Positions 13,263 to 34,902 of a stretch of DNA of 35,090 nucleotides are shown here, piece after piece. The notes beneath the pieces are model-generated. The model was not told where the DNA came from, searched no databases, and saw nothing but the letters and a program-made list of their open reading frames with translations. The position numbers and the translations under genes were made by a program. Source of the DNA: Octopus sinensis (Eukaryota); the NCBI RefSeq assembly GCF_006345805.1, contig NW_021829913.1, forward strand, positions 1 through 35,090, read 5' to 3'. Every line of letters starts with the position of its first letter. The first letter of the stretch is position 1.

Positions 13263-13279
13263 TATGCCAAATCTGCAGC

Positions 13280-14657: not shown

Positions 14658-14674
14658 ATGCATATATATATCTG

Positions 14675-15015: not shown

Positions 15016-15044
15016 ATATATACACACATACATCTATCTATATT

Positions 15045-15086
<42 letters not shown>

Positions 15087-15350: not shown

Positions 15351-15478
15351 ACTCTCTAAGCAACTTTGCAACACCCGAGGAATGTCACCAACGCATGACA
15401 TAATCTCCAGATAAACTGCTCTTCTCTCTTTGTTGTTTTTAGCAGATTGGATTAACAATGTTGACCAAAGTCTTCTCT
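15351..15478 (-). CDS. Candidate internal coding exon of an unidentified minus-strand gene
   Basis: Unique sequence between repeats. Open frame RRLWSTLLIQSAKNNKERRAVYLEIMSCVGDIPRVLQSCLE; acceptor ttctgttttgctgataag and canonical donor A|GTGAGT. Confidence 0.35.
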
Positions 15479-15679
15479 TATCAGCAAAACAGAACATACA
15501 CTCTCAGCTAATGAGGGGCTATGTACGTGGTAAATCAACAGACAAGAAATAGCAGCCAATTTTGCTGCTAATCACACCCTTGTCTTATATCAAAAGACCC
15601 CTTAGACAGTGCAGTTGAAAATAGATGTAAAATTTTGGGATGGTCATGGATGGAATGCTTTTGATCATGAATCCCAATC

Positions 15680-15699
15680 AGAGAGAGGAGAAAGAGAGA

Positions 15700-15738
<39 letters not shown>

Positions 15739-15770
15739 GGAGAGAGTGAGAGAGAGAGAGAGAAAGGGGG
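15680..15770. repeat. (GA)n microsatellite
   Basis: Direct reading. Confidence 0.9.
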
Positions 15771-15784
15771 TAAAAGTATAAAGG

Positions 15785-15924
15785 CTCCCTTCGGTCATGA
15801 ATGACCATGGGATTGCACTTAGAAAGTTCCCCTCTGAGGTACAAGTCCAGCAGTTGCCCATGCATTCCAGCCTCTGCTCTCCATGTCACCAATGTTGTCC
15901 ATGGGAAAGGCAAAGGACGATACA

Positions 15925-15927
<3 letters not shown>
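15785..15927 (-). mobile_element. Family D SINE, 3' part only
   Basis: Matches 14680-14850 (gaccatgggattgcac.tagaaagtt.ccctc...gggaaaggcaaagg..gatacagc). Confidence 0.8.
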
Positions 15928-15977
<50 letters not shown>

Positions 15978-16024
15978 TATATATATACATATATACAATA
16001 GATATGTGTGTGTGAGAGAGTACT

Positions 16025-16390
16025 TAGGTGCAGACGTGGGTTGGTGGTAAGAAGTCTGCTTCCCAGCCACATGGTTCTGGTTTCAGTCCCACAGTGTGCC
16101 ACCATGGGCAGGAGTCTTCTACTACAGTCTCACGCCCACCAAAGAATTGTGAGAGGATTTTGTAGATGGAAACTGAAAGAAGCCCATCATATGTATACAT
16201 ACATCTAAATGCATAGATCTTTGTGAGTATTTCTTCCCCACAATCGCTTGACAACTGGTGTGTGTTTACATTCCTGTAACCTAGTGGTTCATCAAAAAAA
16301 AATCAATAAAATAAATATCAAGATTTTTTTTAAATGAGGTCAATTCATGTGTTTAAAACGTTTCAAGGCAGTGCCCCAGCATGGGCACAA
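16025..16390 (+). mobile_element. Family B SINE, near complete
   Basis: Head and tail match 19772-20186, with an internal (TA)-rich linker. Confidence 0.82.
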
Positions 16391-16924
16391 TATATATAGA
16401 TATATATATATAGATACATACATATAATATAAATCAGAATGGAAAAACAAAACAATAAATTGAACAATGTATGCATGTATATGTAATTTATACACATATA
16501 TAGACACCCCCACCCCATCAGTGGTCTACTACCCCTTCTACCACTCCCTCTCCAATCACATACCCCTATTCATCTCCATTTCTGCCCCTCTCCTCTTCTT
16601 CATATTGATGTGACTAACGATAGCACTGGATCTTTCCGATGGCTCCCTCTACATCAATTCCCTTGTAACAAGAGAGCCAAGACATATATCACCCCCACCC
16701 AACACCCCTCTCATGCACATCAGTCTTCTGGTACTGTTTGGGGTCCACATATAAGGAGCTCATCAGATGTACATGTACCCCATACACTCGCTCCCACCAA
16801 TGTCCATTATATTGACATCAACCATTCACTCTCATCATTTATTGAGATGCCTTATATCTCGCTCTTTCTCACTTCTAATCCCTCCTGGGCTGGATCCAGA
16901 ACAAGAAGGCACCAAGGACACTGT

Positions 16925-17100
16925 AAGACAGTTGATGTTAGGAAGGACAAACACACCATAGAAACGAAACCCAAATAAATATAAAGGCTAAATGACATCC
17001 TGAGACCCATCTGGGAGAGAACCGCTGACCCTCCAATCCATACAAGTGGACAAAACAAATATGTACAGTGATGATGATGATGTGATGATGATGATGATTA
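16925..17100 (+). mobile_element. Decayed RTE 3'-terminal segment
   Basis: gttaggaaggaca...catagaaac and ctccaatccatacaagtgga followed by (GAT)n, similar to 4113-4260. Confidence 0.5.
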
Positions 17101-17427
17101 TAAATGAAGCTGAAAACACACGCACACATATGAAACTAATAAAATGATGAAGATGGAGAGCCCCTTCCAATGTGGAAAGGGTCAGTTAAGTAACATTTAC
17201 ATATTCCCGAAATATAAAAGATGACTTTTGCCTTTCTACATCGTAAGAAGCTGTCAGTCTCCAATGACAAGGCTTCTAGCAAACCACAAGGCTCTTCAGT
17301 ACATGTGTGTGTGTGTGTGTGACTATCTATGTATGTAAGTATGCACACACACACACACGTGGCATATATAGTTTTGTATATGTATATATATTATATATAT
17401 ATATATATACATATTATATATATATGT

Positions 17428-17575
17428 AGGCAGGAGTGCATTTGTAGTAAGAAGCTTGCTTCCCAACCACATGGTGTGGGTTCAGTCCCATTGCATGGCA
17501 CCTTGGGCAAGTGTCTTTGGGCCGAGCAAAGACTTGTGAGGATTTAGTAGATGGAAACTGAAAGAAGCCCATCAT
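17428..17575 (+). mobile_element. Family B SINE head
   Basis: gtagtaagaagcttgcttcccaaccacatgg...ggttcagtccc...ggaaactgaaagaagccc. Confidence 0.82.
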
Positions 17576-17594
17576 AATATATATAATTATATAT

Positions 17595-17911
17595 ATTATA
17601 TAAAAGGGCTTAGTAAAATAAATTACTTTGCCGCATACTGAACTCATTAGAAATAGCAGCTAAAAAACTTTTTTAAAGCTATTTCTAATACTTAAAGAAA
17701 ATCTCTCTCATATTATAGTGTTTGCTTAATTCAACTCACAAAAGTTTGGGGTAAGGACATCGAAAATTTTGTGAGTTGAATTAAGCAAACACTAATATGA
17801 GAGAGATTTTCTTTAAGTATTAGAAATAGCTTTAAAAAGTTTTTTAGCTGCTATTCTAATGAGTTCAGTATGCGGCAAAGTAATTTATTTTACTAAGCCC
17901 TTTTATATAAT
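17595..17911. repeat. 317-bp near-perfect palindrome (149/145-bp arms, 23-nt loop)
   Basis: Arms are identical except for three indels (1+1+2 nt) and have no substitutions; loop 17744-17766. Confidence 0.95.
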
Positions 17912-17999
17912 GTAATAATTTGAATTCGCCTTGAATGGTCCCTTTGCACTGACACTTGGTGAAATTGATTAATAATTAATTAATTTGCCCTCATTGTTG

Positions 18000-18036
<37 letters not shown>

Positions 18037-18230
18037 TTTCTCAGTGTATTTGCTTTGTATGTCGTAATTAGTATACTGTTAATTATAGCAGTTGCTTAAT
18101 CACTAGACTGGAGGCAGACACAATACACACACACACTAAATATATTATATATATATGTGTATGTATTATATTTATATATATATGTAAAAACACATTTATC
18201 TATGCACACAGAAATAATTGTATGTACATT

Positions 18231-18267
<37 letters not shown>

Positions 18268-18461
18268 AAGTATTTATCCCTTTTTCCCTGTAGTGGGAAC
18301 CTAGCACACACACATCCATATACACGAGTATATATATATATATAGACATGATATAGAGACACACATGTAGGACATGTCTAGGCTTTATCATTTGTCTACG
18401 TGATCAAATAGATAACAGCTTGTGTGCAAATTTCACACTACACACACACCCACACACACGA

Positions 18462-18603
18462 GGCGTTAACGCCCACTTCTTCCTGCTATTTATAAATAAG
18501 CCTCACTAGTAGGATTATCACATTTTTGCCCGTTCTTTCAACTGAACTCACAGACAGAAAGACTTCAGGCTGAAATCAAACGCAATTGTTGACTCAAGTA
18601 AGT
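18462..18603 (+). promoter_or_regulatory. Candidate Pol II core promoter and first non-coding exon (~18520-18597)
   Basis: Perfect palindrome GGCGTTAACGCC (18462-18473), TATAAA (18491-18496), TCA Inr-like site ~29 nt downstream, canonical donor AA|GTAAGT at 18598, all in unique sequence. Confidence 0.5.
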
Positions 18604-19203
18604 ACTTTTATGATAATTATCTTCATTAACAACTTCATTAACACATTTACAGTATGAAATATTCCTTACAACTATTTCAAACATAATTATGCTGTTATGT
18701 TGAAAATTGTTTTATTTTCAGGCAGTATTTTTCATACTAGGAACTGTTCAAACATTTCACAGAGTTACATTATAAGCAAAACTTTCATTTCCAGAATATA
18801 ATATAAAGGATAGTTTGGTTATGACAAGGTCAAAACTATTTGATGGAAATTAAGGAAAAATGTAGATTTGTGGATGAGAAAGACATGAATAATAATTGAA
18901 GAGAGGGTGTGTCATTTATAGAGATAGGTTAACAGACTAAATGGTGGTGGTCGTGGTGGTAGAAAGATTTCAAGTTATGTATGTAATGTGAGGCTGATGT
19001 GTTTTACTCCTTTAGTTATTGAACCATGGCCATGCTGGAGCATTGCCTTTATGTATTTAACTGATCGTATTAGCACCAGCATTTCTTTTTAAGTCCGGTA
19101 AATATTTTAACCGAATCTATTTGTGGATCAGCTAAATTAGGAAATGGAGTTGATATTTTAATTAAACAGTAAGTACTAATGATTAAATGATGGAAAGAAT
19201 ATA

Positions 19204-19235
<32 letters not shown>

Positions 19236-19544
19236 AAGTGAGAGAGAGAGAGATACACACTTGTATACATACATATATACGCACACTCTTCACGTTTGTG
19301 CTAATTTCCTCCAATAAACTATAAAAAATGTGTCCAGGATTTCAAATACTTTTACAAGAAGAGAAAGTTTATATTTTTTTGAACAATCTCAAAAATATTT
19401 GATAAATTCTAAAGAAAGAAAATGTAAATTATATTTAATGACAAAAAGTTTTAGATTTTATGTTTCATGGAAAATTCAAAGTTTGTAAAACAATTTTACA
19501 GAAATTTAAGATAGAAATCAAATAGGTTCGTAACTGTGTCTTTA

Positions 19545-20186
19545 TTTTTGTCCCACTAACATTGCTTGACAACCGATGTTGGTGTGTTTACATCCCTGTA
19601 ACTTAGTTGTTCAGCAAAACACACCAATAAATAACTAGGCTTACAAAGAATAAGTCCTGGGGTCGATTTGCTCGACTAAAGGTGGTGCTCCAGTATGGCC
19701 ACAGTCAAATGACTGAAACAAGTATAAGAATAAAAGAATATATATATATATTATATATATTATATACATACAGGCGCTGGAGTGGCTGTGTGGTAAGTAG
19801 CTTGCTTACCACCCACATGGTTCCGAGTTCAGTTCCACTGCGTGGCATCTTGGGCAAGTGTCCTTCTACTATAGCCTCGGGCCGACCAAAGCCTTATGTG
19901 TGGATTTGGTAGGCGGAAACTCAAAGAAGCCCGTTGTATATATATATGTATATATATGTATGTGTGTATGTGTATGTTTGTGTGTCTGTGTTTGTCCTCC
20001 TAGCATTGCTTGACAACCGATGCTGGTGTGTTTACGTCCCCGTCACATAGTGGTTCAGCAAAATAGACTGATAGAATAAGTACTAGGCATACAAAGAATA
20101 AGTCCCAGGGTCGATTTGCTCGACTAAAGGCGGTGCTCCAGCATGGCCGCAATCAAATGACTGAAACAAGTAAAAGAGTAAAAGAG
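19545..20186 (+). mobile_element. Family B SINE: tail-only copy (19545-19740) followed by the best-preserved complete copy (19772-20186)
   Basis: tRNA-like head ggcgctggagtggctgtgtggtaag...gttccgagttcagttcc, internal (TA)/(TG) microsatellite, tail ending gaaacaagtaaaagagtaaaagag. Confidence 0.9.
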
Positions 20187-20291
20187 AGAGTATATACATG
20201 TACACTATATAAACACACACACACATAATATATACATGTTTATGTAAAAGGGAAATAAAATGTTGAAGTTGATATTGAAAAGGAGAGAGGG

Positions 20292-20327
<36 letters not shown>

Positions 20328-20440
20328 AAGTAAAAGAAGAGAAGGACATATGAAGGATATAAAATAGGAAAGGAAGGGTTGTTATCATTATTATTAATTA
20401 CTATTACTATTATTATTATTAATTACTATTACTATTATTT

Positions 20441-21490
20441 GGGTGGTGAGCTGGCAGAATCGTTAGCATGCTGGGCAAAATGCTAGGCAGCTATTTGTTT
20501 GCCTTTACGTTCTCCGTGCAAATTTTGCAGACATCAACCTTTATCCTTTCGGGGTCAATAAAATAAGTACCTTTTGTGTTCTGGGGTCGATGTAATCAAT
20601 TTACCTGCTCTCCAGAACAAGCTGGCTTTCTGTTAAAATTTGAAGCCATTATTATTATCATTATTATTATTATTATTATTATTACAACTCATCTGCCACT
20701 ATATTCTGAGTTCAAATTCCACCAAGGTCAACTATGGCTTTCATTCTTTTGGGGTCAATTCAATAAGTTCCAGCTATGCACTGGAGGCGATATAATTTAC
20801 TAGTCCCCTCACCCCAAATTTCAGGCCTTGTGCCTATAGTAAGAGAGTATTCTTCTCCTTATTCTTCTTCTTCTTCTTATTATTATTATTATTATCATTA
20901 TTATTATAATTTCTGTGACGAGCTGGCAGAATTGTGAGAATGCAAGCAAATGTTGAGCGGCATTTTGTCCATCTTTACATTCTGAGTTCAAATTCCACCA
21001 AGGTTGACTTAGCCTTTCATCCTTTTGGGATCGATAAATTAAGTACTAGTTGAGTACTGGGGTCAGTGTAATAGACTGGACCCTTCCTTGAACTTGCTGG
21101 CCTTGTGCCAAACTTGAAATCATTTTTATTATATTAAAAAAAAAATAAAAGAAATCATTGCTGTTGTTGTTGTTGTTTTTACTGCTGCTGCTGCTAATAT
21201 TATTATTATTGATGTTGTTATTGTTATAGTTATTGATATTCTTCTTATCATTATTCTTATTATTATTAATGTGATGAACAAGCAGAATTGTTACAAAATG
21301 CCAGACAAAATACTTTGCATCATTTCTTCCAAGTTTACATTTTGAGTTCAAATTCCACCAAGGTTGATTTTGACCCTTGTCCTTTTGGGATTGATAAAAT
21401 AAGAACCAGTTAGGGGCTGGGGGGGGGGGTGTAATCAATTAACCCCCCCAATACCCAAAATTTCAGGCCTTATGTCTATAGTAGAAAGGA
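20441..21490 (+). mobile_element. Array of four same-orientation family A SINEs separated by (TTA)n runs
   Basis: Copies at ~20441-20625, 20700-20855, 20915-21125 and 21275-21490 each carry ttctgagttcaaattccaccaagg...ccttt(t/c)gggg.tcgataaa..aagtacc-like cores. Confidence 0.85.
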
Positions 21491-21519
21491 TTATTATTAT
21501 CTTCAAAATATTACCAAAA

Positions 21520-21690
21520 AAATTTGGGGGCATGGCTGTATGGTTAAGAAACTCACTTCACAACCTTGTGGTCTCAGGTTCAGTCCCACTTTGCAGCACC
21601 TTAAAGAATTAACTTCTTCTAATGTTCCAGGTTGACTCAAGCCTTGTGAGTGGGTTTCGTACATGGAACTGATAAATCCTATGGTATATA
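21520..21690 (+). mobile_element. Family B SINE head, diverged
   Basis: ggggcatggctgtatggttaagaa...caggttcagtcccact...caagccttgtgagtgg. Confidence 0.7.
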
Positions 21691-21749
21691 CATGTGTGTG
21701 TATATTCATGTATGCATATCTACATTTGTACTTGTATGTGTATGCATGT

Positions 21750-21787
<38 letters not shown>

Positions 21788-21902
21788 ATATGTCTGCTCA
21801 CGTCTCCTTGTCTTGACATCTGCTGCGAATTATAAACAAATGTCACGTCAAACAAACAGAGTCGTTTGTTTGCAGTGTTCCACCAGAAAACATATCCAAC
21901 CA

Positions 21903-22170
21903 TTGTGCTGTTCATGTTGGAAGAACTTGGGGAAATATTCTCTTGCTTGGAACCAGCTGAGGATTGGTGACCCTCATCGAGTGTAGTCATAGACTTGACT
22001 GAGTGGCACTCACAAGAACCTGGCAAGAAACAAAACAAAATTATGAGAGGGAAAATACAGAAAAAAAAAATACATCACCTCCAGTTCACTGCTTCCTGTA
22101 GCAGAAACAGCTGGAAGCTAATGAAGGTGTCTACGTAACTCTTGTTCTTTTGTCGTTCATTGATTCATAT
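21903..22170 (-). other. Candidate exon pair separated by a 59-nt GT-AG intron (22020-22078)
   Basis: Minus strand GAG|gtgatg...polypyrimidine ttttgttttgtttcttgccag|GT. The downstream exon (21903-22019) has an open frame GSCECHSVKSMTTLDEGHQSSAGSKQENISPSSSNMNSTM. The upstream exon does not splice cleanly in phase. Confidence 0.4.
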
Positions 22171-22270
22171 CTATAAACATACATAGACACAAACATTTAT
22201 ACACAGGTATGTGAAGGTATATTCATATATTTACATATGTCCATTTATGTATATGTGTATGTATGTATAT

Positions 22271-23649
22271 ATCATCATCATCATCGTTTAACATCCACTT
22301 TCCAAGCTACCATGGTTGGACAATTTCACTGAGGACTGGCGAACCAGATGGCTGCACCAGGCTCCAATGTTGATCCGGCAGAGTTTCTACAACTGGATGC
22401 CCTTCCTAACGCCAACCATTGAGAGTGTAGTGGGTGCTTTTACGTGTCACCAGCACGGGGCCAGTCACGCGATACTGGTAACGACCTTGCTCAAATCTTT
22501 TACACATGCCACCTGCACAGGTGCCAGTAAGGCGATGCTGGTAACTATCAAGCGACTTTTATGTGCCACTGGCATGGAAGCCGGTTAGCCACTCTGTCAA
22601 CGATCACACTCGTATGGTGCTCTTTGCTCCCCGCTAGCACAGATGCCAGTCATCGGATTTGATTTTGATTTCACTTGCATCAACAGGTCTTCGCAAGCAG
22701 AGTTTTAGTGTCCAAAGAAGGAAAAGGGACGCAAAGTGGGCTGGTTACGCCCCTGGCATAGGCCACGAGGTTATGTTCTCATGTGGCTTGTTGAGTCTTC
22801 TCACGCACGGCATATTTCCAAAAGTGTCGGTCACTAATCATTTCCTTGGTGAGGCCTAAAGTTCGAATGTCATGCTTCACCACTTCATCCCACGTTTTCC
22901 TGGGTCTACCTCTTCCACAGGTTCCCTCAACCGCTAGGGTGTGGCACTTTTTCACACAGCTATCCTCATCCATTCTTGCGGCATGACCATACCAGTGCAG
23001 TTGTCTTTTGTACACCACATCTGCTGCTTCTTAGGACCAATATTTCTCTCAAGGTACTTAGACTCTGTCGAGTATGCACACTGACATTACACATCCATTG
23101 GATCATACTGGTTTCATTCCTTGCGAGCTTACGCATGTCCTCAGCAGTCACAGCCCATGTTTCACTGCCATGTAGCATGGCTGTTCGTACACATGCGTCA
23201 TACAGTCAACCTTTTACTCTGAGCGAGAGGCCCTTTGTCACCAGCAGAGGTAAGAGCTCTCTGAACTTTGCTCAAGCTATTCTTATTCTAGCAGCTACAC
23301 TTTCAGCGCACCCTCTCCTGCTGCTGACTTGGTCACCTAGGTAACGGAAGCTATCAACTACTTCTAGTTTTTCTTCCTGGAATGTGGCGGAAGTTGTTCT
23401 CTGCGCATTTTCAGTGTTTATTGCACCCGAGCATCTGCCACATACAAAAGCTATCTTCCCAGTTAGCCTTCCTTTGATATTGCTGCACCTCTTATGTGTC
23501 CATAGCTTACCACTGGGTACATCTTATAGAATTTTTACCTATGCCTCTACTACAGATCGAGCAGGGCCATCTACCTGAAAGGATTTGTGGTTTGCTTGCC
23601 TTCCCACTTATTAGGATTTGGTTTTAGCTAGGTTGACTCTAAGGCCCTT
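22271..23649 (-). mobile_element. 5'-truncated RTE copy with a long (~500 bp) 3' UTR
   Basis: Minus strand GLRVNLAKT, PCSIC, YLG, MLHGSETW, CGRGRPRKTWDEVVKHD; (GAT)n tail at 22271-22285; the 5' end abuts (TA)n at 23650. Confidence 0.93.
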
Positions 23650-23733
23650 TGATAATATATATATATATATATATAAATTAATATTTAGCAGAAGTAACAA
23701 AGTGACCTAAAATCCGAAAGTTTTGTTTATTAG

Positions 23734-23795
23734 CATTTATCAAACTGGTTCTTTGGAGGTATATTCCCAGACCTCAAAAACCAGTTTGATAAGTG
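23734..23795 (+). ncRNA. Pre-miRNA-shaped hairpin (candidate only; strand uncertain)
   Basis: 24-bp stem with two 1-nt bulges and a 12-nt loop; perfect 14-bp core ttatcaaactggtt / aaccagtttgataa. No expression evidence. Confidence 0.3.
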
Positions 23796-24119
23796 TCAAC
23801 TCTCAGACCTTGAGTCCCTACTGCCATGCCCCTATCACCCCTACCTCTATCTTTCATCTCTCAATCACTCTCTCTTCTTCTTTTTACTCTACTATCTTAC
23901 TACTGTAACAAAGATTGGCAGTAAATCTCTTCTCTTCACCATTCTTCCAATGAAACTAGGGATGTTACTGGACCTACCTGAGTCTCTCCTCAACACTCAG
24001 CCACTCCTTTTCATATATTTATTACCCTAGATCTCTCACCCATCCCAGGGTATATGTCACACCCAGAGATTGAGGGGAACCTTTAGTTTTGTCAAGGTCA
24101 TGGCGATTGTCTCTAGCGA

Positions 24120-24280
24120 TGGTGCCATAAGATGCACCCAGTGCACATTGTGCAGTGGTTGGTGTCAGGAAGAGCATCCAGCTGCAGAAAGAAAACCAGA
24201 AAATGTAACTTCAGGCAAGATATTCTCTGAACCATCCAACCCATTCCAGCATGGAAAGTGGGGGTAAAATGATGATCATC
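24120..24280 (+). mobile_element. Isolated RTE 3'-terminal segment (extreme 5' truncation or RTE-dependent short element)
   Basis: gtggttggtgtcaggaagagcatccagctg...gaaccatccaacccattccagcatggaaag...atgatgatc. Confidence 0.7.
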
Positions 24281-24650
24281 ATACATACATACAGATGTAT
24301 GGATGTATAAATATACATATGTGCATCCTTGTGTATATATTATACACATTCATTCTATCATATATACATATATATGTATGTGTATCCTGAAGAAGGTCTC
24401 TTTTATTTTTCATTCCTCCTGGGGTCAATAGAGTAAGTCATTATTTCATAGACCAAGGAGGATCATTCTGATGATGATGGGTCACCAGAATGTCATTAAA
24501 AAACCCCCACCAATATTCCTAATCCACCTCATTAAACCCCCAATACTTCATAATAAACTACACCAAGTTATAACTCCTCACCTAACACAAAACAAAACAC
24601 ACTTCACCTGCCAAACCCCTTTTTCATACAAACACATCTTTCTCATTGCT

Positions 24651-26340
24651 ACGAAGAATTCCGGGTAGAGGTAGGGGTCCACCAAGGCTCAGTACTCAGC
24701 CCCCTCCTATTTATCATAGTCCTCCAGGCAATAACGGAGGAATTCAAGACAGGATGCCCTTGGGAGCTCCTCATATGCTGATGACCTTGCTCTAATTGCT
24801 GAGTCGCTATCAGAACTGGAGGAGAAGTTTCAGGTGTGGAAACAAGGATTAGAATCGAAGGGCCTCAGAGTCAATCTAGCTAAAACCAAAGTCGTAATCA
24901 GTAGAAAGGTAGACAAATCACAAACACCTTCAGGTAGATGGCCCTGCTCGATCTGTAGAAAAGGTGTAGGTAGAAACTCTATAAGATGCACCAAGTGTAA
25001 GCTATGGACACATAAGAGATGCAGCAATGTCAAAGGAAGGCTAACTAGGAAGATGGTTTTTGTATGTGGCAGATGCTCAGGAACAATAACACTGAAAATG
25101 CTCTGAGACCAACTTCTGTCACTTTCCAGGGAGAAAAACTAGAAATAGTTGATAGTTTCCGTTACCTAGGTGACCAAGTCAGCAGCGGGGGCGGGTGTGC
25201 TGAAAGTGTAACTGCTAGAGTAAGAATAGCTTGGGCAAAGTTCAGAGAGCTCTTACCTCTGCTGGTGACAAAAGGCCTCTCGCACAGAGTGAAAGGCAGA
25301 CTGTATGATGCGTGTGTACGAACAGCCATGCTACATGGCAGTGAAACATGGGCCGTGACTGCTGAGGATATGCGTAAGCTCGCTAGAAATGAAGCCAGTA
25401 TGCTCCGATGGATGTGTAATGCCAGTACTCACACTCGGCAGAGTGTAAGTACCTTGAGAGAAAAGCTGGACCTAAGAAGCATCAGTTGTGGTGTGCAAGA
25501 GAGACTTTTGCGCTGGTATGGTCATGTGGCGAGAATGGATGAAGATAGTTGTGTGAAAAAGTGCCACACCCTAGCGGTTGAGGGAACCTGTGGAAGAGGC
25601 AGACCCAGAAAACCTGGGACGAGGTGGTGAAGCACGACCTTCGAACTTTAGGTCTCACTGAGGAAATGACTAGAGACCGAGACCTCTGGAAGTGTGCTGT
25701 GCGCGAGAAGACCCGGCAGGACAAGTGAGTCCACAACCCGTGGCCTTCTACATGGGACGGAGCCAGCCTACGTATGCATACCTTCCCTTCTTGGGACACA
25801 AAACTCTACTTGTGAAGACGTATTGAGGCAAGTGAGGATCAGAATCGAAATCGATCAATGGAAATTGCGGATGTGCTACCAGTGCCGGTGGCATGTCGAA
25901 ACTCTGCTTGTGAAGACCCATTGAGGCAAGTGAGGATCAGAATCGAAATCGATCAATGGAAATCGATCAATGGAAATTGCAGATGTGTTACCAGTGCCGG
26001 TGGCATGTAAGAGAACTTTCCGTTTCGCGACCGTTGCCAGCACCGCCCCGTTTCGTGTTCGTTGCCAGCCTCGCCTGGCCCTCGTGCCGGTTGCACATAA
26101 AAAGCACCATCCGTTCGTGGCCGTTTGCCAGCTCTGTCTGGCACCAGTGCGGGTGGCAACGTAAAAAGCACCCACTACACTCACGGAGTGGTGGCGTTAG
26201 GAAGGGCATCCAGCCGTAGAAACACTGCCAGATTTGACTGGGCCTGATGAAGCCTTCTGGCTTCACAGACCCCAGCAGAACCGTCCAACCCATGCTAGCA
26301 TGGAAAACGGACGCTAAATGATGATGATGATGATGATGAT
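24651..26340 (+). mobile_element. 5'-truncated RTE copy, relatively young, with a tandem duplication in its 3' UTR
   Basis: ORFs 24834-25106 and 25064-25630 encode GLRVNLAKT, the PHD finger, FRYLG, MLHGSETW and LRWYGHV. A ~96-bp duplication lies at 25803-26010; (GAT)n tail at 26318-26340. Confidence 0.95.
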
Positions 26341-26588
26341 TAAAGATAATTAAGATGAACCTACCTTTCATTAATTGGGCTTATTCATTAACCAATCTTT
26401 ATTAATCTCAATTAGCAACAAATAATAACGATCCTCTCAACATGCTGTCTATCAGTGTGATTATATGAAAGCCCATCTTGGATAAGCTTTCCGAGCTAAT
26501 CAATGTTGTGTATGATAATTGTGTGGATTATATTGAAATGTCGAGAGATTTACAGCATTTGTCAGGTTAAGAACAGTTTCATCTCCAG

Positions 26589-26612
26589 CTTTATTCGTAT
26601 CTGTGAATCCAG
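26589..26612 (+). other. Candidate 24-nt 5' UTR micro-exon
   Basis: ttcatctccag|...|CCAG gtaaat, upstream of the strong acceptor at 27157. Confidence 0.25.
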
Positions 26613-27164
26613 GTAAATATGATGGAAACCAAGCCAACCATGACTGTCCCATCATTAGTAATACTTGTACCTGACAAATGTCTATGAAACATAATAAAGT
26701 CTATGTTTTGCTAATTGTTCCATGTTAACAAAGTTTGAACATGATTGCGTGTGTTGGGACATAATATAGCATGTACACCAATTAAAGTTAATTTTCTCTA
26801 CAGCTTAGTGTGTCTCGTTATTGAGTGCTTTTGGAGCAGGGGAATCTCTTTGACTAATTATCGTTAAATAAATCTAAGCCACACATGACTATTTCTTTGT
26901 GATGTTGAGAGCAAATATCATTTCCAGTGAAAATAATTATTTCTAATATTTAGACTCCATGTAATTAATGAAACTTATTAATACATCTTAGAATAGATTG
27001 TAATAAGTTGTTTAAATATTAATTAGACAAGATTAATTCACTGACAGAAATACATAAATGTTTTGTTTGGTTTTTCAAATGATGAAGCAAACATCATCTC
27101 CCTGAAACTTTAATATTTTCACAAAGCTAAATGTTTTCCTTATATTCTTTTTTACAGATTCACT

Positions 27165-29682
27165 ATGGAAGACCAGACTGAAAATACTTTAAGGAAACTT
27201 ATCCCTCAGAAAAGGGCTTTGAGTTACTCAACACCAAAATGGGATGAAGAAGGTTGACCATCAAAGGTGTAAATATGTGAGAGATGACGGTTCAGAGGAG
27301 AGAAATGTCCGAGAAACGAGCTTCATCTCAGCCAACAACAAAACAAAAAAGACATAAAGGAGACCCTAAAAACTGGGAAAAATGGGAAGACGAAATATTT
27401 TTGACAAACACATATTTTATACAAGATTCAATGCCTATGAGGACAAAATTGATTTGTTGATAAATTCTCGGAAAGAAATATGTACTTTTTTAAAAAGAAT
27501 AGGAATGGATGAAAATACTTTTCTAAAACATTTACACAGAGAATAGAAATTCTGACGAAAGACATTAAAAAAAAAGATTACAATCAAGAATTTATAATTT
27601 TTGGAAAACTAGAATTGTTCCTGGAACACTATATACAAGAAATATTCTACAAGACAAACACAAAACCATTGAAGCACCAAAAATAATCACAAAATTTCGG
27701 CCTCTTCAGCCAGTTGTGACTAGAGAAGCAAACATTGAGGAATCTGGAGAAGAATTTGAAGAAATCCAATAATATCCAATATTGTCATCATAGAAGAGGG
27801 AGTGATGACATATTCCCACAATTGCAAGATAATAAGTTTAGTAACAAGAGACAGTGACAGAATTAATGTCCATTGTCCATCTCTCTGTGACCAGTTTCAC
27901 AAGAATCAGTGAAGACATGGTTCTGGCAACCCTCCCCTTCCATGAAATGATTCTTATTATCAGCCCCAAAACCTTCAAGATCAAAAGGATACAGTTGGGG
28001 TTACATATGGGAGTTACTTGGAAGATTCTACACTTATAGGTGTAGAAATGTTTGGTAAGATAGTTTACCAATTGATTGGGAGGATAATACCATTAACTAT
28101 CATTTATTACCCAAGAAAACCCTACAGATATTGCTGTAGGGGTCCAGAATATACTTGTAATTACATTCGCCAGCATCAACAGAGTAATCTGTTACAAACT
28201 GGATGGCCAACAGTTATGGGAGGTAGAGACCCATTCTCTGCACCTCCCAAGTAAAATCTCTCTCTACCAAAATTATTTCTATGTCCTCCAGGGACAAATA
28301 ATTTATAGGATTTCAGCTAAAGGTGGTGTGACAAGGAGGGACATTGGCAGGAAATGCCACTCTATTTCTGTTGGTAAAGATACCATTTTGGTAACAGATT
28401 ATTGCGGCAAACCACATGGTATTCAAATGAATAAAGACTTTTGGCCCAACCTGTCATACAACCACCAGCTACATACCCCCAGTTTAAAAGACTATATCGA
28501 TATTGAGGATTGCTACAACATTACAAATATTCTACCTATGTCTACATCTCTATATTAATAATTTACAAAAACAAGAAAGCTAAATTATTCACTGATAACG
28601 GGGGAATAATAACCAAAATAATTCAGTTTTCCTTGAGCTTCCTTCTTTCTGTTGTAGAATAAACGCAAACAGATTCCTGGTATTTTATCCTGAAATGAAA
28701 GGGTTTCAGTATATCACCTGTCCTGAACTAAGAAAAGGCCCTTTAATAAAGGTGCAAACTGGTTACCTGAAAATATGTCATATTGTATCAAATAAGTGTC
28801 TAGCTGTGACCACCACTGAAAACAAAAGCGAGGTCCATATCCTCTTGATCCACAAATATAAAGTTGACATTGCAGAAAGAATTTCTCTGGGACATCATAA
28901 TGTCAGCATTGCTGCAACTCCAATTAATTTTGTAGTCGTAGATGGAAACGAAAATAAAATGGTATTTTATTCCACATGTGGTGAAGAACTTTTTCAAAAA
29001 TACCTTCCATTCTATGGCTACCCTCATCACATCTACTCTGATAATGTTTATTTCTATGTCCTCTTCAGGAGACACTCTCTCAGATGTTAGATGTTACGAT
29101 CTATATGGACAAATGAAATGGCAGTGGGAACTGCCTTTCCCTGTTCACCCTCACATTGCTGTTTTCCAAGGAACTCTTTATGTCCCGGACACTCAACTCA
29201 ACAGGGTTCTTCTTTACAAGTATCAAGACTGGTCGTCTGCTTGCCTTTTGCCCATTAAAAATCCTTACATCAGAAATCTAAATCTACGTCTCAAAGAAAA
29301 GGAGAATGACCAAAAACTTGTAATTGGCGAAATATGTGATCTGTCCAATGGACAGTTGGTGGTGTCCGACATCAACCATGATTGCTTGTTGTACATTTCT
29401 GAGGAAGGAGACATTGTGTCAAGATTACCTCTGCCGTCTACAGCCACAGATATATGTCGATGGGATTCTAATCATATAGGGGTCACATTACCCCTACAGA
29501 AACAATTAAGGGTCATCGGAAACCTATCAAAGAGAGTGAGAAGTGTATCATTTAGGCAGCCTTATGTACAGGTGTGTAAGATGGGTGAATGTGAAATTGT
29601 CTGTTATTGTGATAAACCATCACATTTAGATATTTTAGCCATCAATTATTTATCAAGTTGAAGAAGTAATTAAGACAATTAA
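27165..29682 (+). pseudogene. Frame-disrupted 5' half of the multi-beta-propeller gene (helical N-terminus + modules 1-3); real pseudogenisation or assembly indel errors
   Basis: Strong acceptor ttttccttatattctttttttacag (AG at 27156-27157) with ATG 8 nt into the exon. Frame-hopping gives continuous protein-like text, e.g. FNAYEDKIDLLINSRKEICTFLKRIG, TSFTRISEDMVLATLP, PTDIAVGVQNILVIT, ATDICRWDSNHIGVTLP. About 15 frame changes by manual count. Confidence 0.8.
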
Positions 29683-32625
29683 TATCCCTGTGTTGTAAAA
29701 TCATTATCAATAGACAAGAAAACAGAAAAGCTATTAATTGTTACTAGGGGAAAAGCTTTTCAGTACAACACTAGAATAGGTGGTGGTGGTCGTGGAGGTC
29801 GTGAGATGGTCCCCAGTGTTTTAATGTCCCAAGTGAAACGTCCCCTCAGTCTCCAAGGTGGATCTATTGACCAAACGTCTGTTTATCTGATAGACAGAAG
29901 CCGTATGTTTGCCATAAACGATCAGAATTTGTTGGTTAATGATCTCGTTACTAATAATCAACTGAATTATTATATCGACCTGGTGGATGTATTTTCCAGA
30001 CACATTTCTCTCAGTGAAATGTTGTCTTCCACTTTATATCTACAGGACCTCACAGTTTCTGATAAAGCCAGACATATTCCTCTCCCTAAACATTTGGGAG
30101 ACAAAGGACCAGCGAGGATTGAACGTTTGGTTCTTACTGAAAATAATCTGATTGCAGGATTTGACGAGGAGAATGGAATCATTAAGATATTCACATTGGA
30201 TGGTCACCTATTGGATTCAATCAAAGTGAATGTTTATAGAGATATTAAAATGTGTCGATGGCAGTCAAACACACTGGTCATTACGAGTTGGGATGATAAT
30301 AATAAACCCCAACTGTTGACATTAAAAGTGGAATTTCCATTGTCGTTGGTAATTTACAAAACGAGAAATAAATATGATTGTGTGGCTTCTTTATCAAACA
30401 ATCAACTGGTTTTGAGTGAATTTGGAGATGGAAGACATTTGCATTTTGTTGATATTAATGAAATACATTCGAGTGTGAAGGAAATAAAAAAAATAGACAT
30501 ACCTGAACCATTAATAGAGAGAGACGAAGATGGAGATTATTCTGATATAATCCAGGATATTAAAGTTACTGATGAAGATGTCATCATTGTCTTAAACTGG
30601 AGATTCATCATTTTCTTCAACAGTGGTGGTCAATATTTACATTCAGTCAGACACTACATGTGGTATTATTTTGGTGATGTTGTTGACACGATGACAATTG
30701 ATGACAGTTTTTTGTACATTCATGGTGAGTGGGAGAAATGTTTTGGTTTATCTGAATATAAAAACATTTTGAGTTTGACCCAGAATGGGGAATACAAGAG
30801 AATATTTTTAAATAAAAGGATTTATAAAGATGAAGTAGATTTCTCCAGTATAGACTGTAAAGGACCAAGGTTTGTTGGAAGCCCCAGGAGGGGAAGAAGA
30901 GAGAATGAATTGTATGTTGAAGGGTTGTTTATGGTGAATCGAGACAGCTTCCCGGTTGCTCGTTTACAAACAGACGAATGTCCTGTTCAAGTAAAAGATT
31001 TTGATGTCTCTGAGGAAGGAAAGACAGTTGTGTGTGAAAAAGCCAATAATGGAAATGTTAAAATATTCGATGAAGACGGCCAGTTGCTACGTCACAGAAA
31101 TGTTGCAAGTTTAGTTGGTGGTGTGTGTTTTACACAAGAATCACACATAATGGCCACGGTTCCTAAAAGGAAAGAAATATTTCAACTGAATGGAGAAGAT
31201 TTGCAGACATCTCAAGTTTGGTCGAGTCTCATCCCTTATGGTGTAATATGGAGAAAAGTGGCGGGTATTTACTGGTGTGTACATAATGAATTGATTGAAT
31301 GTCATTGCATAAAGATTGATGGGGACCAAGTGAACATTCTGGAATCTGTGTCGTCATTAAATCTTGATTCTGGTCTTCGTTTCCCTTCCATTACATCTGA
31401 AACGAACAAGGAAATATTCAGTAATGAATTAATTAATAAATTGGAATACAGAGGAGGGGATGGAGATGGAGGAGGAGGAAGAAGAAGAGGTAAATCAGGT
31501 GAAATAATTGGTGAAGGTAGATTAAAGGTGAGATGTGGTAATTACATAGCGGAGATTAATAATTCTGGAATTGATGAAATATCAGTGAGGAGACTTCCAT
31601 ATAGGACAGCAATGGTCCCTTTTTCCATTCCTGCATTCGAGGAACCTGTTGATTATGATTGTGGGGACATTAGGGACTGGAACAGTAAACTAATTAAGTC
31701 AGATGAGAATGTGAGTGTGTTGATGTTTCGAGAAAGTGTCACATTAATCAGAACAACAACAACAACAACAGTGGACATACTTCAACATGAACAACAACAA
31801 CGAACACCACTGGACATATGTCGGTGGACAGAGGAATGTTTCATTGTCGCCTTTGGGAGAGAAATGAGGGTCTTCAACAGGGATCTCCGTCGTTTAAAAA
31901 CCATCAGAACTGAGAAATACTACAACAGGATTTATAAATACAACGACAATCAACTCGTGTGTGGTGGTCACGATATTAGAGACATAACTCAAGAAGAGAG
32001 ACACAAGAAATACGAAAGAATATGGGAGAACAACAAGGATTACTATTATTGCAAAGACCTTGACATCTTTGACCCTTATTATGTGGATGTGGTTGATATC
32101 AAAGATGGGAAATGTAAAGATGAATTGTGTCGTGGGAAGAGGAGGAGATTGGGAAGGTTTGAGGGAGATGAAGGGGTGGATGATGTGGGAGTCACATCTT
32201 TTGGTGATGTTGTTGTTGTGAGGAGGGAGATGAAGGAGAAGAAGGGGTCTGAAGATTGGGAAGTTTTTTGTTTTGTGGAATGGTTCAGGGAAAAGTCTTT
32301 GGTGAGGAGGATAAGAATAGAAAAAGGAAGGTTTTATGATCTGGAATATTATATTCCAAGACCTCGTCTGACCATAATTGGTGAATGTGTTTATATAACA
32401 GATTCAAGAAACAATATTTACGAAATACCTCGACATATTGAAGAGGAAACATCTGAAGATGATGAAATCCTGAGATTAAAAGATAATCCAAAATATTTAC
32501 TCCTCAGTGAGGATGATAATGAAGTCTCTGAAGTTCTTGGTTTGGATGTTTCAGACAATTCTTTGATGGTTTTTGGAATTATTCCTGGACCTCAACCTTT
32601 TGCTTTCTTTTATTTTGACAAATAA
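29683..32625 (+). CDS. Intact 3' part (980 codons; first ATG 29806, 939 aa) of an intronless protein with tandem NHL-like beta-propeller modules
   Basis: 2.9-kb stop-free frame in AT-rich DNA with repeated blade-like motifs (IKIFTLDGHLLDSI, VKIFDEDGQLL, IIFFNSGGQYL, MCRW/ICRW). AATAAA (32621-32626) overlaps the stop. Fold assignment is inferred from motif pattern. Confidence 0.85.
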   Translation, partial: YPCVVKSLSIDKKTEKLLIVTRGKAFQYNTRIGGGGRGGREMVPSVLMSQVKRPLSLQGGSIDQTSVYLIDRSRMFAINDQNLLVNDLVTNNQLNYYIDLVDVFSRHISLSEMLSSTLYLQDLTVSDKARHIPLPKHLGDKGPARIERLVLTENNLIAGFDEENGIIKIFTLDGHLLDSIKVNVYRDIKMCRWQSNTLVITSWDDNNKPQLLTLKVEFPLSLVIYKTRNKYDCVASLSNNQLVLSEFGDGRHLHFVDINEIHSSVKEIKKIDIPEPLIERDEDGDYSDIIQDIKVTDEDVIIVLNWRFIIFFNSGGQYLHSVRHYMWYYFGDVVDTMTIDDSFLYIHGEWEKCFGLSEYKNILSLTQNGEYKRIFLNKRIYKDEVDFSSIDCKGPRFVGSPRRGRRENELYVEGLFMVNRDSFPVARLQTDECPVQVKDFDVSEEGKTVVCEKANNGNVKIFDEDGQLLRHRNVASLVGGVCFTQESHIMATVPKRKEIFQLNGEDLQTSQVWSSLIPYGVIWRKVAGIYWCVHNELIECHCIKIDGDQVNILESVSSLNLDSGLRFPSITSETNKEIFSNELINKLEYRGGDGDGGGGRRRGKSGEIIGEGRLKVRCGNYIAEINNSGIDEISVRRLPYRTAMVPFSIPAFEEPVDYDCGDIRDWNSKLIKSDENVSVLMFRESVTLIRTTTTTTVDILQHEQQQRTPLDICRWTEECFIVAFGREMRVFNRDLRRLKTIRTEKYYNRIYKYNDNQLVCGGHDIRDITQEERHKKYERIWENNKDYYYCKDLDIFDPYYVDVVDIKDGKCKDELCRGKRRRLGRFEGDEGVDDVGVTSFGDVVVVRREMKEKKGSEDWEVFCFVEWFREKSLVRRIRIEKGRFYDLEYYIPRPRLTIIGECVYITDSRNNIYEIPRHIEEETSEDDEILRLKDNPKYLLLSEDDNEVSEVLGLDVSDNSLMVFGIIPGPQPFAFFYFDK

Positions 32626-32687
32626 ATATTTCCAGAAATACTAAACTTCAATCTTCTTCTTCTTCTTATTGTTGTTGTTGTTGTAAA

Positions 32688-32740
32688 TGGCTTCGCCCGG
32701 GAATCGAACCTGCATCGCATACATTGCATTCTACACACTT
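32688..32740 (-). pseudogene. Degenerate tRNA(Gly)-like fragment
   Basis: Reverse complement agtgtgtagaatgc...ggttcgattcccgggcgaagcca resembles the D-arm (AGTGGTAGAATGC) and T-arm/acceptor (GGTTCGATTCCCGGCCGATGCA) of tRNA-Gly; anticodon arm unrecognisable. Confidence 0.45.
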
Positions 32741-32895
32741 ATTGTTGTAACATTCCTCAACACACTCTCTTTGTGTGTGTGTATATTTATATACAGTATA
32801 TGTACATGTGTTTATATATATATACACACATATTTAGGCATGTATGTATAGAAATAAGGCTATAAGTATGTATGTTTGTGTGTGTGTATATACGC

Positions 32896-32939
<44 letters not shown>

Positions 32940-33014
32940 GCATGCATGTATGTATAGGAATGTCTGGTCCGAAAGCAGAGACTTTCATAATCATCGATTC
33001 TCCATTAAAAGGCA

Positions 33015-33423
33015 GACGACCACCGCCGCCGTCTCCGCCGTCGTCGTCGTCGTCGTTTCCGCCGTCGTCGCCGTCGTCGTCGTCGTCTCCGCCGTCGTCG
33101 TCGTCTCCGCCGTCGTCGTCGTCGTCGTCTCCGCCGTCGTCGTCGTCGTCGTCTCCGCCGTCGTCGTCGTCGTTTCCGCCGTCGTGGTCGTGGTCGTCGC
33201 CGTCGTCGTCGTGGTCGTCGCCGTCGTGGTCGTGGTCGTGGTCGTCGTTATCATCATCATCATCATCGTCGTCATCATCATCATCGTCGTCGTCTTCATC
33301 GTCGTCATCATCATCATCATCGTCATCACCATCATCGTCATCATCGCCATCATCATCGTCATCACCATCATAGTCATCATCATCACCATCGTCACCATCA
33401 TCATCATCGTCGTCATCATCGTT
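33015..33423. repeat. Compound trinucleotide repeat: higher-order (GTC)nTCC/GCC units grading into (ATC)n
   Basis: Direct reading; ~410 bp with no frame-breaking interruption. Confidence 0.95.
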
Positions 33424-34902
33424 GTGTGTGCGTGTGTGCAGTCTGCATCTGACAGTTTTTAACGTTTAATAAGAATAGATTGTTGTTGTTGTTGCAGTGA
33501 CATTCCAACTGCACACACGCACAAACATTGCCTTTCGTCCTCGTAGGGTTGTTGTTGTTGTTGTTGTTGTAGTTGGGGGTTCATAAAAAAGAGAAGGACA
33601 CTTTAAGAAGCATTCAGTAAAAGCTTCCCATAGCTGGTCTTTTTCACGCTAGAATAGAAACCACTTTATTTTTCATATAAATTTTGAAGGACAGATAAGA
33701 AGCATTCATAAATAAAATTGACCTGTATATGGTCTCATTTCATGCTAGAAGAGCCATCTAACCTTCACATTTTTGTTTCATCACAATAAAAATCGATGGA
33801 CAATTTCCAAAGCATCCATGTCAAATATTGTCCTATAGATGGCCTAACAGTATGCCAGAAATAACAGCCAAATACTCTGAAATTTGTATCGTGTTTCATA
33901 AAAAGTGAAGGACACTTTAAGAAGCAACTCTAAAATATTGTCCTGCGGCGGTTTAAGTAAAATATTATAAAAGTATGCATCTATGAGTTTTATGTGTTTA
34001 AAAAACATAGCAAAGACATGTGTGTATATGTAGGTATATACATGTGTATAAAGGTATTTTTGTATAAAAATGGGTATTTTTGAATGAAATTTGGTAGAAA
34101 TAACTTTCAAACGATGCAGATTACGATTAAAAAGAAATTTGTTGGCAAAGTTTTGTAAGGGTTCGAGGGAAAAAGTGTGTGATTTAAGGGAGATTTGTGT
34201 TGTTTCTAGCACACCACCCTCCTTGTCTTCTTTTTTTTTTCTCATTTTTTCCCTCAGAAACACATTTATGTAACAAAAATAAAAAGAATATTTTTAAAAT
34301 CTCTGATTATTTTTAGCCCCACTTCCTGGCCCCCGATTCTTTCTCTTTATATAATTGTAAAATATTGGAGAGCCTGAGGAGATTCTTGCTGGGATTTATC
34401 CACGGGATTTAAATAAGAGCTTTGTAAAAGAGGATTTCTTTTGAGAGCATCCTTTTCTGTTAGAAATTGAAGTGGAAGTTTCATTAAAAATATCCATTTT
34501 CCTGGAAGTTATGAGGAAACAAAGTCGATGGGGTGTTCATCTGTAGTTATGCCACAGGATGTATACATATATATATATATATATATATAACTGTAGAAAT
34601 GTAGGTGTGTATATATATATATATATATTATATGTATGTGTGTTTGTGTATACATTTATTCATGTATATGTACAAGTTTAAAAAAGAAATATCAAAAGAT
34701 GTTGGAATATTTGAGGTATTGGATAATTTCCGACTCTATTGTATAGGATTGCCGATACATTTATATAGGAATATAAATATACATCATAATTATACCCACA
34801 GGAAAGCAGAATATTATACATACATGCATATTCATATATAAACTCAAATATATATACATATAATTATACATTATTATACGTAGACTTCTTGCACACACAT
34901 AG

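Follow-up and report, generated by a model that had tools for sequence, protein, structure and literature searches.

Canonical TRIM-NHL proteins (Brat, Mei-P26, Thin/TRIM32, TRIM2, TRIM3, TRIM71/LIN-41, NHL-2) are conserved across animals and combine one six-bladed NHL propeller with a module of RING finger, B-box and coiled coil (RBCC). Ligands bind at the top face of this propeller: RNA in Brat and TRIM71/LIN-41, protein partners in TRIM2/3/32. Molluscan TRIM-like proteins, such as CAE1315789.1 of Sepia (Acanthosepion) pharaonis (P0076) and KAL3857364.1 of Sinanodonta woodiana (P0082), also have one propeller, placed behind a RING and/or B-box and a coiled coil. Several propellers per chain occur in scaffolds such as DDB1 (three WD40-like propellers), LRP4/5/6 and LRP2 (tandem six-bladed YWTD propellers) and the IFT-A and UTP proteins (tandem WD40 propellers). 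Cephalopod genomes hold many lineage-specific gene expansions, few of which have a structural or functional assignment. Here we describe a gene on the forward strand of a 35,090-nt stretch of Octopus sinensis DNA (contig NW_021829913.1, positions 1 to 35,090; hereafter the window). Our analysis shows that this locus, at 27165 to 32625, belongs to an octopod-specific multi-copy family with a short N-terminal region and six tandem NHL-type propellers.

All six octopus modules show homology to the propeller of the molluscan TRIM-like proteins across most of that propeller, and a two-blade signature ('..VsD..N..iK.F..dG.l...L...P.GIC.W....i.VTLP..kQl') is common to both sides; the molluscan propeller stands alone behind its zinc fingers and coiled coil, whereas the octopus family has six propellers behind a small unrelated helical domain. 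Canonical TRIM-NHL proteins share the NHL blade motif and the number of blades with the octopus modules, but the resemblance is weak and does not extend beyond single blades, and their single propeller, RBCC and conservation across animals are all absent from the octopus family. The multi-propeller scaffolds offer an analogy as docking platforms; however, they show no significant sequence relationship to the family beyond short WD40 matches, have template modelling (TM) scores of 0.1 to 0.26 and use a different blade family, and the LRPs are extracellular. We know of no described animal protein with six tandem NHL propellers and no RBCC. The domain is known, and we could find no published description of its six-tandem, RBCC-less, octopod-specific arrangement or of the family. 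We hold the architectural and evolutionary description given below with high confidence.

One coding exon with six repeated modules

Frameshift-aware protein-to-DNA alignment and tblastn, with the full-length proteins P0012, P0020 and P0030 as references, defined one colinear coding exon from an ATG at 27165 to a TAA at 32623-32625 (+), with a length of 5,461 nt (1,820.3 codon-equivalents). An initial annotation, made from the letters of the sequence, had bridged the frame breaks to reach a single exon of about 1,820 codons, and the colinearity with full-length paralogs bears this out. It had also called the gene intronless. Since an AG acceptor precedes the ATG and the O. vulgaris model P0012 (21.6-kb span) joins an upstream exon at the matching site, the gene is not strictly intronless, although the main open reading frame (ORF) lies on a single exon. 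As read from the sequence, the acceptor implies an upstream exon, either 5' untranslated or short coding. The parts of the gene are as follows.

27165..32625 (+), the six-propeller gene's coding exon in full, frame-broken in the 5' half (tblastn and frameshift-aware alignment)
27135..27157 (+), polypyrimidine tract with an AG acceptor, just ahead of the ATG (sequence read)
29683..32625 (+), the only long open stretch, 980 codons to 32622, first ATG at 29806 (939 amino acids); tail of module 3 and modules 4 to 6
32621..32626 (+), AATAAA, candidate polyadenylation signal overlapping the stop codon (sequence read)

A database look-up of the 939-amino-acid ORF and the family search found no protein on record identical to the window ORF. 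All six copies of a blade-2 motif that the initial annotation had noticed were recovered, every one at its position, and they are spread over three frames.

27890-27937 (+), TSFTRISEDMVLATLP, motif of module 1, frame 2
28644-28691 (+), SFCCRINANRFLVFYP, motif of module 2, frame 3
29446-29493 (+), TDICRWDSNHIGVTLP, motif of module 3, frame 1
30244-30285 (+), IKMCRWQSNTLVIT, motif of module 4, frame 1
31117-31164 (+), GGVCFTQESHIMATVP, motif of module 5, frame 1
31810-31854 (+), LDICRWTEECFIVAF, motif of module 6, frame 1

A blade of the type 'hhhhD..N..I.hF..dG' had been said to precede each motif; it is clear in modules 2 to 5 but weaker in module 1 and weak in module 6. With boundaries placed by the motifs, the modules measure about 220-300 residues each. 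They are listed below with HHalign expectation values (E) against molluscan NHL propellers, AlphaFold2 predicted local distance difference test (pLDDT) scores and ratios of non-synonymous to synonymous substitution (dN/dS).

27165..27709 (+), N-terminal region: basic, probably disordered stretch, then a helical domain of ~70 residues; free of Cys/His zinc-finger patterns
27710..28471 (+), module 1, NHL-like propeller; HHalign E 1.5e-8; AlphaFold2 model of a paralog with six four-stranded blades, pLDDT 80-90
28472..29268 (+), module 2, NHL-like propeller; HHalign E 7.9e-8; AlphaFold2 model of a paralog with 24 strands, equal to six blades
29269..30069 (+), module 3, NHL-like propeller; HHalign E 6.3e-16; interrupted by a Gly/Arg-rich loop at ~29782-29808, helical linker after it
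30070..30942 (+), module 4, NHL-like six-bladed propeller; HHalign E 3.3e-20; six blades in AlphaFold2; dN/dS 1.75 against the O. vulgaris copy L001
30943..31629 (+), module 5; HHalign E 2e-7 over the first ~130 residues; AlphaFold2 pLDDT <50; Gly/Arg-rich loop
31630..32622 (+), module 6, acidic propeller with insertions, six to seven blades; HHalign E 4.6e-11; median isoelectric point (pI) 5.3; dN/dS 1.73

Module 5 is the shortest module and among the most conserved, with the invariant columns of the family concentrated in it. BLASTP among the pieces of the window exon gave weak internal similarity (best E 6e-5), which is not enough by itself. We then aligned 19 family members, cut the alignment at the motif-based boundaries and compared the six module profiles by HHalign. 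Module-versus-module E values ranged from 1.5e-8 (modules 3 and 6) and 2.7e-6 (modules 4 and 5) up to ~1e-3, the links joined all six modules, and linked pairs aligned in register, for example columns 43-126 with 42-127 or 2-106 with 2-113. As judged from these profiles, the six-fold modular repeat is real and far beyond chance.

Relationship of the modules to NHL propellers

All six modules matched, in register, a profile of seven external propellers (HHalign probability 93.6-99.3%, E 2e-7 to 3e-20), with 130-216 columns per module aligned to propellers of proteins that pass the Pfam NHL model and bear a RING and/or B-box; reversed-sequence controls of this comparison gave E values of at least 0.12. 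An exhaustive HMMER search of 1.84 billion representative proteins, with a profile running from the tail of module 3 to module 6, yielded only 39 matches, the strong ones being family members of O. vulgaris, O. sinensis, O. bimaculoides and Argonauta hians. Behind these, at E 4e-8 to 7e-4, came a tier of mostly single-propeller proteins with a B-box and/or NHL above the Pfam cutoff (NHL 29-36 bits). It included a freshwater mussel protein and, as the nearest relative outside the family, a RING, B-box and NHL protein of Sepia pharaonis (E 4e-8); three WD40 proteins were interspersed at E 9e-8 to 2e-4, each matching one short stretch. Single-propeller proteins matched the profile in module 4 (window ORF residues 143-377) plus module 3, and the signature '...VsD..N..iK.F...G.l...L...P.GIC.W....i.VTLP...Ql' is common to the octopus modules and the cuttlefish and mussel proteins.

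A module-4 profile run against all PDB sequences retrieved TRIM-NHL domains in 12 of 12 matches, led by Thin (4.6e-4), TRIM71 (0.0026) and Brat (0.0026), followed by TRIM2 and TRIM3, with values ranging to 0.03; these matches are short and cover a single blade. No significant Pfam domain was detected in the open pieces of the window or in six paralogs scanned directly, and phmmer of the 980-amino-acid ORF against PDB found nothing. As homology appears only with profiles and Pfam NHL stays below threshold, we use the label "divergent NHL-type propeller", assigned through profiles and transitive homology. The initial annotation had likened the modules to the NHL-like propeller of molluscan TRIM-like proteins, and HHalign for six modules agrees with the profile searches on this point. 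On this profile evidence, all six modules have their homologue in the one NHL-type six-bladed propeller that molluscan RING/B-box (TRIM-like) proteins carry at the C-terminus, and they are derived from it.

Predicted structures

Structure prediction had been proposed as a check on the repeated propellers. We modeled the 980-amino-acid window ORF by AlphaFold2 with a 31-sequence family alignment and counted blades from secondary-structure strings. In this model (predicted TM score 0.63), module 4 (residues ~130-413) forms six groups of four strands at pLDDT ~65-91, module 6 (residues ~615-980) is all-beta with six or seven strand groups at pLDDT 65-93, and the orphan tail of module 3 (residues 1-127) has a pLDDT <50. 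For the other half of the protein we used the paralog P0053, which contains the N-terminus and modules 1-3 (mean pLDDT 71.7). Its residues 1-78 are disordered (pLDDT <50) and are followed by helices at 79-145 (pLDDT ~51-67), and six blades of four strands, at pLDDT 80-90, make up each of modules 1 (~171-405) and 2 (424-669). AlphaFold2 thus gives repeated propellers, and the proposed check left the reading standing: modules 1, 2 and 4 are six-bladed (pLDDT ~75-90), and modules 3 and 6 are all-beta and propeller-like. Foldseek searches of PDB with both models returned multi-propeller proteins (IFT-A, DDB1, LRP2/LRP4, UTP/WDR) at E 1e-13 to 1e-21, the top matches of the two models having E values of 8e-15 and 3e-21; TM-scores are low because only individual propellers superpose. 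At the level of prediction, the models confirm repeated beta-propellers; the propeller subtype is not told from Foldseek.

The modules could be generic WD40-, YWTD- or SGL-like propellers with a convergent resemblance to NHL, as might be read from the sub-threshold Pfam NHL score, from the WD40/YWTD multi-propellers (IFT-A, LRP2/4, DDB1) at the top of the Foldseek results and from the short, single-blade PDB profile matches. However, the HHalign alignments run in register over 130-216 columns per module with bona fide NHL proteins that bear a RING and/or B-box, HMMER reaches those same proteins at E 4e-8 in 1.84 billion, and the PDB matches are exclusively TRIM-NHL. Modules 1, 2 and 4 have six blades, not seven, and no WD40 or Ldl_recept_b Pfam match was obtained on the propeller modules at E up to 1, except for a sub-threshold CFAP43 WD40 match of 12.8 bits. 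Convergence is thereby made very unlikely, and we retain homology to the NHL propeller of TRIM-like proteins.

N-terminal region and missing zinc fingers

The initial annotation had described an N-terminus free of RING, B-box and other zinc fingers; in agreement, the gene, the rest of the window and the N-terminal alignment of the family show no signature of a RING, a B-box or a coiled coil. Pfam detected no RING in the window pieces or full-length paralogs, and a pattern scan of the six frames of the window detected none either. No B-box was found by Pfam in the window pieces or paralogs, and none attributable to the gene came from the six-frame pattern scan. Loose Cys/His patterns in the window are confined to a zinc-finger-like motif of a long interspersed nuclear element (LINE) remnant (24945-25022) and to low-complexity sequence at 13200-13286 (-), and the family N-terminal alignment contains no conserved Cys/His. 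Without an RBCC module, the proteins would have no intrinsic E3 ubiquitin-ligase activity.

Instead of the ~200-residue helical region first reported, the N-terminus consists of ~80 disordered residues and a ~70-residue helical domain, which is kept in both N-terminal sequence variants of the family. This domain had no Pfam match, its PDB profile search returned only noise (best E 0.0098, designed helical binders), and its helices showed no profile similarity to the pre-propeller (coiled-coil) regions of molluscan TRIM-like relatives (E of at least 0.03). The intact proteins lack an N-terminal signal peptide, their N-terminus being hydrophilic, and show no convincing transmembrane segment, since even the 19-residue windows of highest hydrophobicity fall in charged beta-strands. 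The family proteins are therefore probably cytoplasmic, as far as these sequence features tell.

The O. vulgaris gene model P0046 joins ankyrin repeats and a RING of the zf-C3HC4_3 type to family modules, and P0054 (O. sinensis LOC115228948) belongs to the same sub-lineage. P0046-type models may represent genuine E3-ligase fusion members or chimeric predictions.

An octopod-specific multi-copy family

Clustering at 90% identity gave 55 protein clusters, all from Octopus, named only "uncharacterized" or "hypothetical" and with no Pfam domain in the propeller region. Full-length members have 1,570-1,712 amino acids, and O. bimaculoides LOC106873529 (P0039) is encoded by an uninterrupted 1,712-codon single exon. 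The Argonauta hians protein P0056 (1,913 amino acids) has all six motifs, so the architecture is older than the Octopus-Argonauta split. The whole window exon is 61-70% identical at the amino acid level to full-length members from O. sinensis and O. bimaculoides; its 980-codon ORF is 85-89% identical to the closest full-coverage O. vulgaris models and up to 94% identical over partial-length models. The family had been proposed to be lineage-specific, and indeed members were found only in Octopus species and Argonauta among the 1.84 billion representative proteins. It had also been called unannotated, which is true of its function, whereas its gene models are already public as "uncharacterized protein". 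A literature search found no paper that mentions the LOC identifiers of the family and none that describes an octopus NHL expansion.

A deep branch formed by P0059 (O. vulgaris) and P0102 (O. bimaculoides LOC106882419) is 93.9% identical over 1,661 amino acids between the two species, and only 32% identical to P0039. This branch, apparently single-locus, may be a conserved founder and is the best candidate for functional work. Many models of the expanded clade map to a single 29-Mb chromosome of O. vulgaris, at positions that include 9.1, 10.2, 22.0 and 22.2 Mb; the family, multi-copy in Octopus, undergoes birth-and-death turnover. Paralog models are often fragments that start at different internal methionines, and these scattered start points indicate widespread decay in the family. 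Many Octopus "hypothetical protein" models of 500-1,300 amino acids are fragments of decayed members, a warning for annotation.

A single exon in high copy number, with broken copies and LINE neighbors, invites the reading that the ORF is part of a transposable element. Copies do number in the tens, many of them decayed, and the locus is flanked by non-LTR retrotransposon remnants. Yet homology to older paralogs is limited to the coding sequence and ~100-260 nt of 3' flank, no terminal repeats were seen, and the protein has no transposase, reverse transcriptase or integrase domain. A splice acceptor precedes the ATG, the deep branch is 94% conserved between species at single loci, and the close copies sit in large colinear segmental duplications. 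We rejected a transposable-element origin, which is extremely unlikely given the CDS-limited homology, domain content, acceptor, conserved branch and segmental duplications.

State of the window copy

The initial annotation had announced a giant protein. Intact giant members do exist in the family, but the window copy is frame-broken, by pseudogenization or by assembly error. The exon has 11-18 frame breaks, depending on the reference protein, a larger number than the bridging in the initial annotation would imply. To place them we compared the window with two O. vulgaris copies. The window is colinear with chromosome OX597841.1 at 10.21-10.25 Mb (L001) at ~93-97% nucleotide identity. Another segmental copy on that chromosome, L005 at 9.08-9.10 Mb, matches the window as well as L001 or better in the gene and in the flank downstream of it. 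Colinearity covers 8190-26656 of the window with L001 and 18857-34383 with L005, in O. vulgaris segments ~1.1 Mb apart. L001 is the closer copy upstream (93-97%, versus ~91% for L005) and L005 the closer one in the gene and downstream (~96%); the gene itself has ~96% DNA identity and is colinear with both loci. Judged from sequence identity, this mosaic suggests a segmental duplication with exchange between copies. One-to-one orthology with L001 was dropped, L005 being equally close or closer in the gene.

Fifteen frameshifting indels separate the window from L001 between 27253 and 29691. In a three-way alignment with L001 and L005, ~14 frameshifting indels are private to the window, 11 of them 1-nt deletions.

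27252..29692 (+), window-specific frameshifting indels (pairwise and three-way DNA alignments with L001 and L005)
~27252 and 29649 (+), -2 indels
~27295 and 27883 (+), +1 indels
~29081 (+), +4 indel
~27380, 27530, 27765, 28010, 28071, 28101, 28548, 28609 and 29692 (+), -1 indels
27636 (+), further frameshift, common to the window and L005

The O. vulgaris copies are themselves disrupted: L005 is broken by 5-6 private frameshifts in its 5' half but keeps a 3' ORF of 979 codons open (P0010), and L001 has 1,123 open codons at its 5' end and one frameshift, in an A-run. The three closest copies are thus each disrupted differently, which argues that decay is typical of the subfamily and makes pseudogene the likeliest status of the window copy, the alternative being a copy with indel errors in its assembly.

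Were the frameshifts all long-read assembly errors, the window would hold an intact functional six-propeller gene. The 11 of ~14 private indels that are 1-nt deletions lie mostly in homopolymers of 2-4 nt, and non-coding flanks show the same excess of 1-nt deletions in the window (20 versus 6), so some of the frame breaks may be assembly errors. The ratio of private indels to substitutions, 14/37 in the 5' half, is roughly double that of the non-coding background, and substitutions there have a dN/dS of 0.59. However, errors should not spare the 2.9 kb at the 3' end, where none were seen against ~8-9 expected, and the two nearest copies in O. vulgaris, whose assembly is independent, have their breaks elsewhere (5-6 frameshifts in L005, 1 in L001). 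Moreover, many paralog models are truncated, as decay common in the subfamily would produce, and no identical protein is annotated anywhere. An intact gene at this locus is therefore doubtful, and we favor a decayed copy.

Side by side, the window and L001 show two classes of block: those with ~2% substitutions hold 3-4 1-nt indels per kb, mostly missing in the window, and those with 4-6% substitutions are nearly free of 1-nt indels. This pattern could come from heterogeneity of assembly or polishing, or from exchange between duplicates.

All private frameshifts lie at or 5' of 29692. The 3' 2.9 kb contains no frameshifts and its indels are all multiples of three (P ~2e-5 if private indels were uniform). 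Candidate explanations are a short form that is functional, recent conversion by an intact paralog and uneven polishing. The first would make the 3' ORF (939-980 codons) a short three-propeller gene beside a dead 5' remnant, and L005, independently broken in its 5' half and open over 979 codons in its 3' part (P0010), fits it, as does a Met right after the Gly-rich linker that is conserved in the family consensus. Against this stand the truncated family models, which start anywhere, as expected when a gene finder picks the longest ORF in decayed copies. A start inside module 3 would leave a partial propeller in a region with pLDDT <50, and recent gene conversion of the 3' half could explain the pattern equally well, the mosaic of identities between the window and the copies L001 and L005 being compatible with it. 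We therefore regard a functional short gene as unlikely and keep to a decayed copy of the six-propeller gene.

Evolutionary rates and possible function

Relative to L001, dN/dS is 0.59 for the N-terminus and modules 1-3, 1.75 for module 4, 0.27 for module 5 and 1.73 for module 6. Because L005 is as close as L001, these values compare very close homologues and not certain orthologues. Module 4 has 60 non-synonymous and 8.7 synonymous changes and module 6 has 47 and 7, dS is not raised in either, and a rough binomial estimate for the two modules combined gives a one-sided p of ~0.01. Among eight diverse paralogs, mean identity is 66-68% in modules 3 and 5 and 53-55% in modules 1, 4 and 6.

By analogy with TRIM-NHL proteins, an intact member might serve as a platform for multivalent binding, with a top-face binding surface on every one of its six propellers. 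The conserved modules 3 and 5 would dock a constant partner, and the variable, fast-evolving modules 1, 4 and 6 would recognize changing ligands. Viral or transposon RNA or protein would be the likeliest ligands, and the family, having lost its own E3-ligase module, would then be of the sensor or restriction type. We put forward a multivalent recognition or binding function of the family tentatively. A bolder version, in which octopods strung together six TRIM-derived NHL propellers, dropped the E3 module and turned the locus to an arms race, sensing viral or transposon RNA or protein with copy turnover, diversifying modules 4 and 6 and modules 3 and 5 kept constant for signaling, we consider rather improbable as it stands. 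Copy turnover, pseudogenes, in-frame indels and dN/dS >1 beside a conserved module do form the pattern of innate-immune recognition families, and, if true, the arms-race version would add an antiviral recognition class in a lineage whose antiviral repertoire is largely unknown. The family is now concrete, a TRIM-like NHL propeller reused six times per polypeptide minus the ubiquitin-ligase part, and offers a candidate open to testing, whether for antiviral or anti-transposon sensing in octopus or for RNA regulation specific to the lineage.

Taken as a whole, the explanation that we favor, a decayed copy of an octopod six-propeller family whose members act as multivalent binding platforms, appears reasonably probable. 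Several observations weigh against it. For the propellers, Pfam NHL stays below its 20-bit gathering score (best window piece 11.6 bits, E 0.3; best paralog, P0059, 18.5 bits; other paralogs without a match), and Foldseek on multi-domain models does not separate NHL from WD40 or YWTD propellers. Module 5 (415-637) has a pLDDT <50 in the AlphaFold2 model and is supported by sequence only, and module 3 is seen only in the truncated P0053 construct, with four confident blades, a Gly-rich loop and a fifth blade. As to the decay, the excess of 1-nt deletions recurs in non-coding flanks, and substitution across the broken 5' half still appears to be under constraint, which counts against certainty about a pseudogene. 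Concerning function, dN/dS >1 rests on ~120 substitutions between copies of ambiguous orthology, at least two of the three compared copies being disrupted; per-module pI and net charge give no clear RNA-binding signal; and the family's function, including the RNA or pathogen-ligand binding suggested in the initial annotation, is proposed purely by analogy.

Other features of the window

A tRNA-like T-arm motif, gggaatcgaacc, lies at 32689-32730, ~65 nt past the stop codon, and is probably a fragment of a tRNA-derived short interspersed nuclear element; ARAGORN found no tRNA gene anywhere in the window. Farther downstream, microsatellites occupy parts of 32899-33420 and 34562-34637, with (TA)20, ~95 copies of CGT, ~57 copies of ATC and (TA)38, and they give spurious long ORFs on both strands at 32872-33462. 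Remnants of non-LTR retrotransposons are located at 713-3943 (+) and 24945-25630 (+), with ORFs bearing Exo_endo_phos, RVT_1 and a PHD-like zinc finger; the fragment at 24945-25630 is a second, related C-terminal piece, ~1.5 kb upstream of the gene. A 5.4-kb block at 11071-16480, which may be intron, untranslated region or repeat and is free of family homology, is ~96% conserved relative to L001 and contains only one ORF, of 173 amino acids, with no Pfam match. This block falls within the span of the O. vulgaris gene model P0012.

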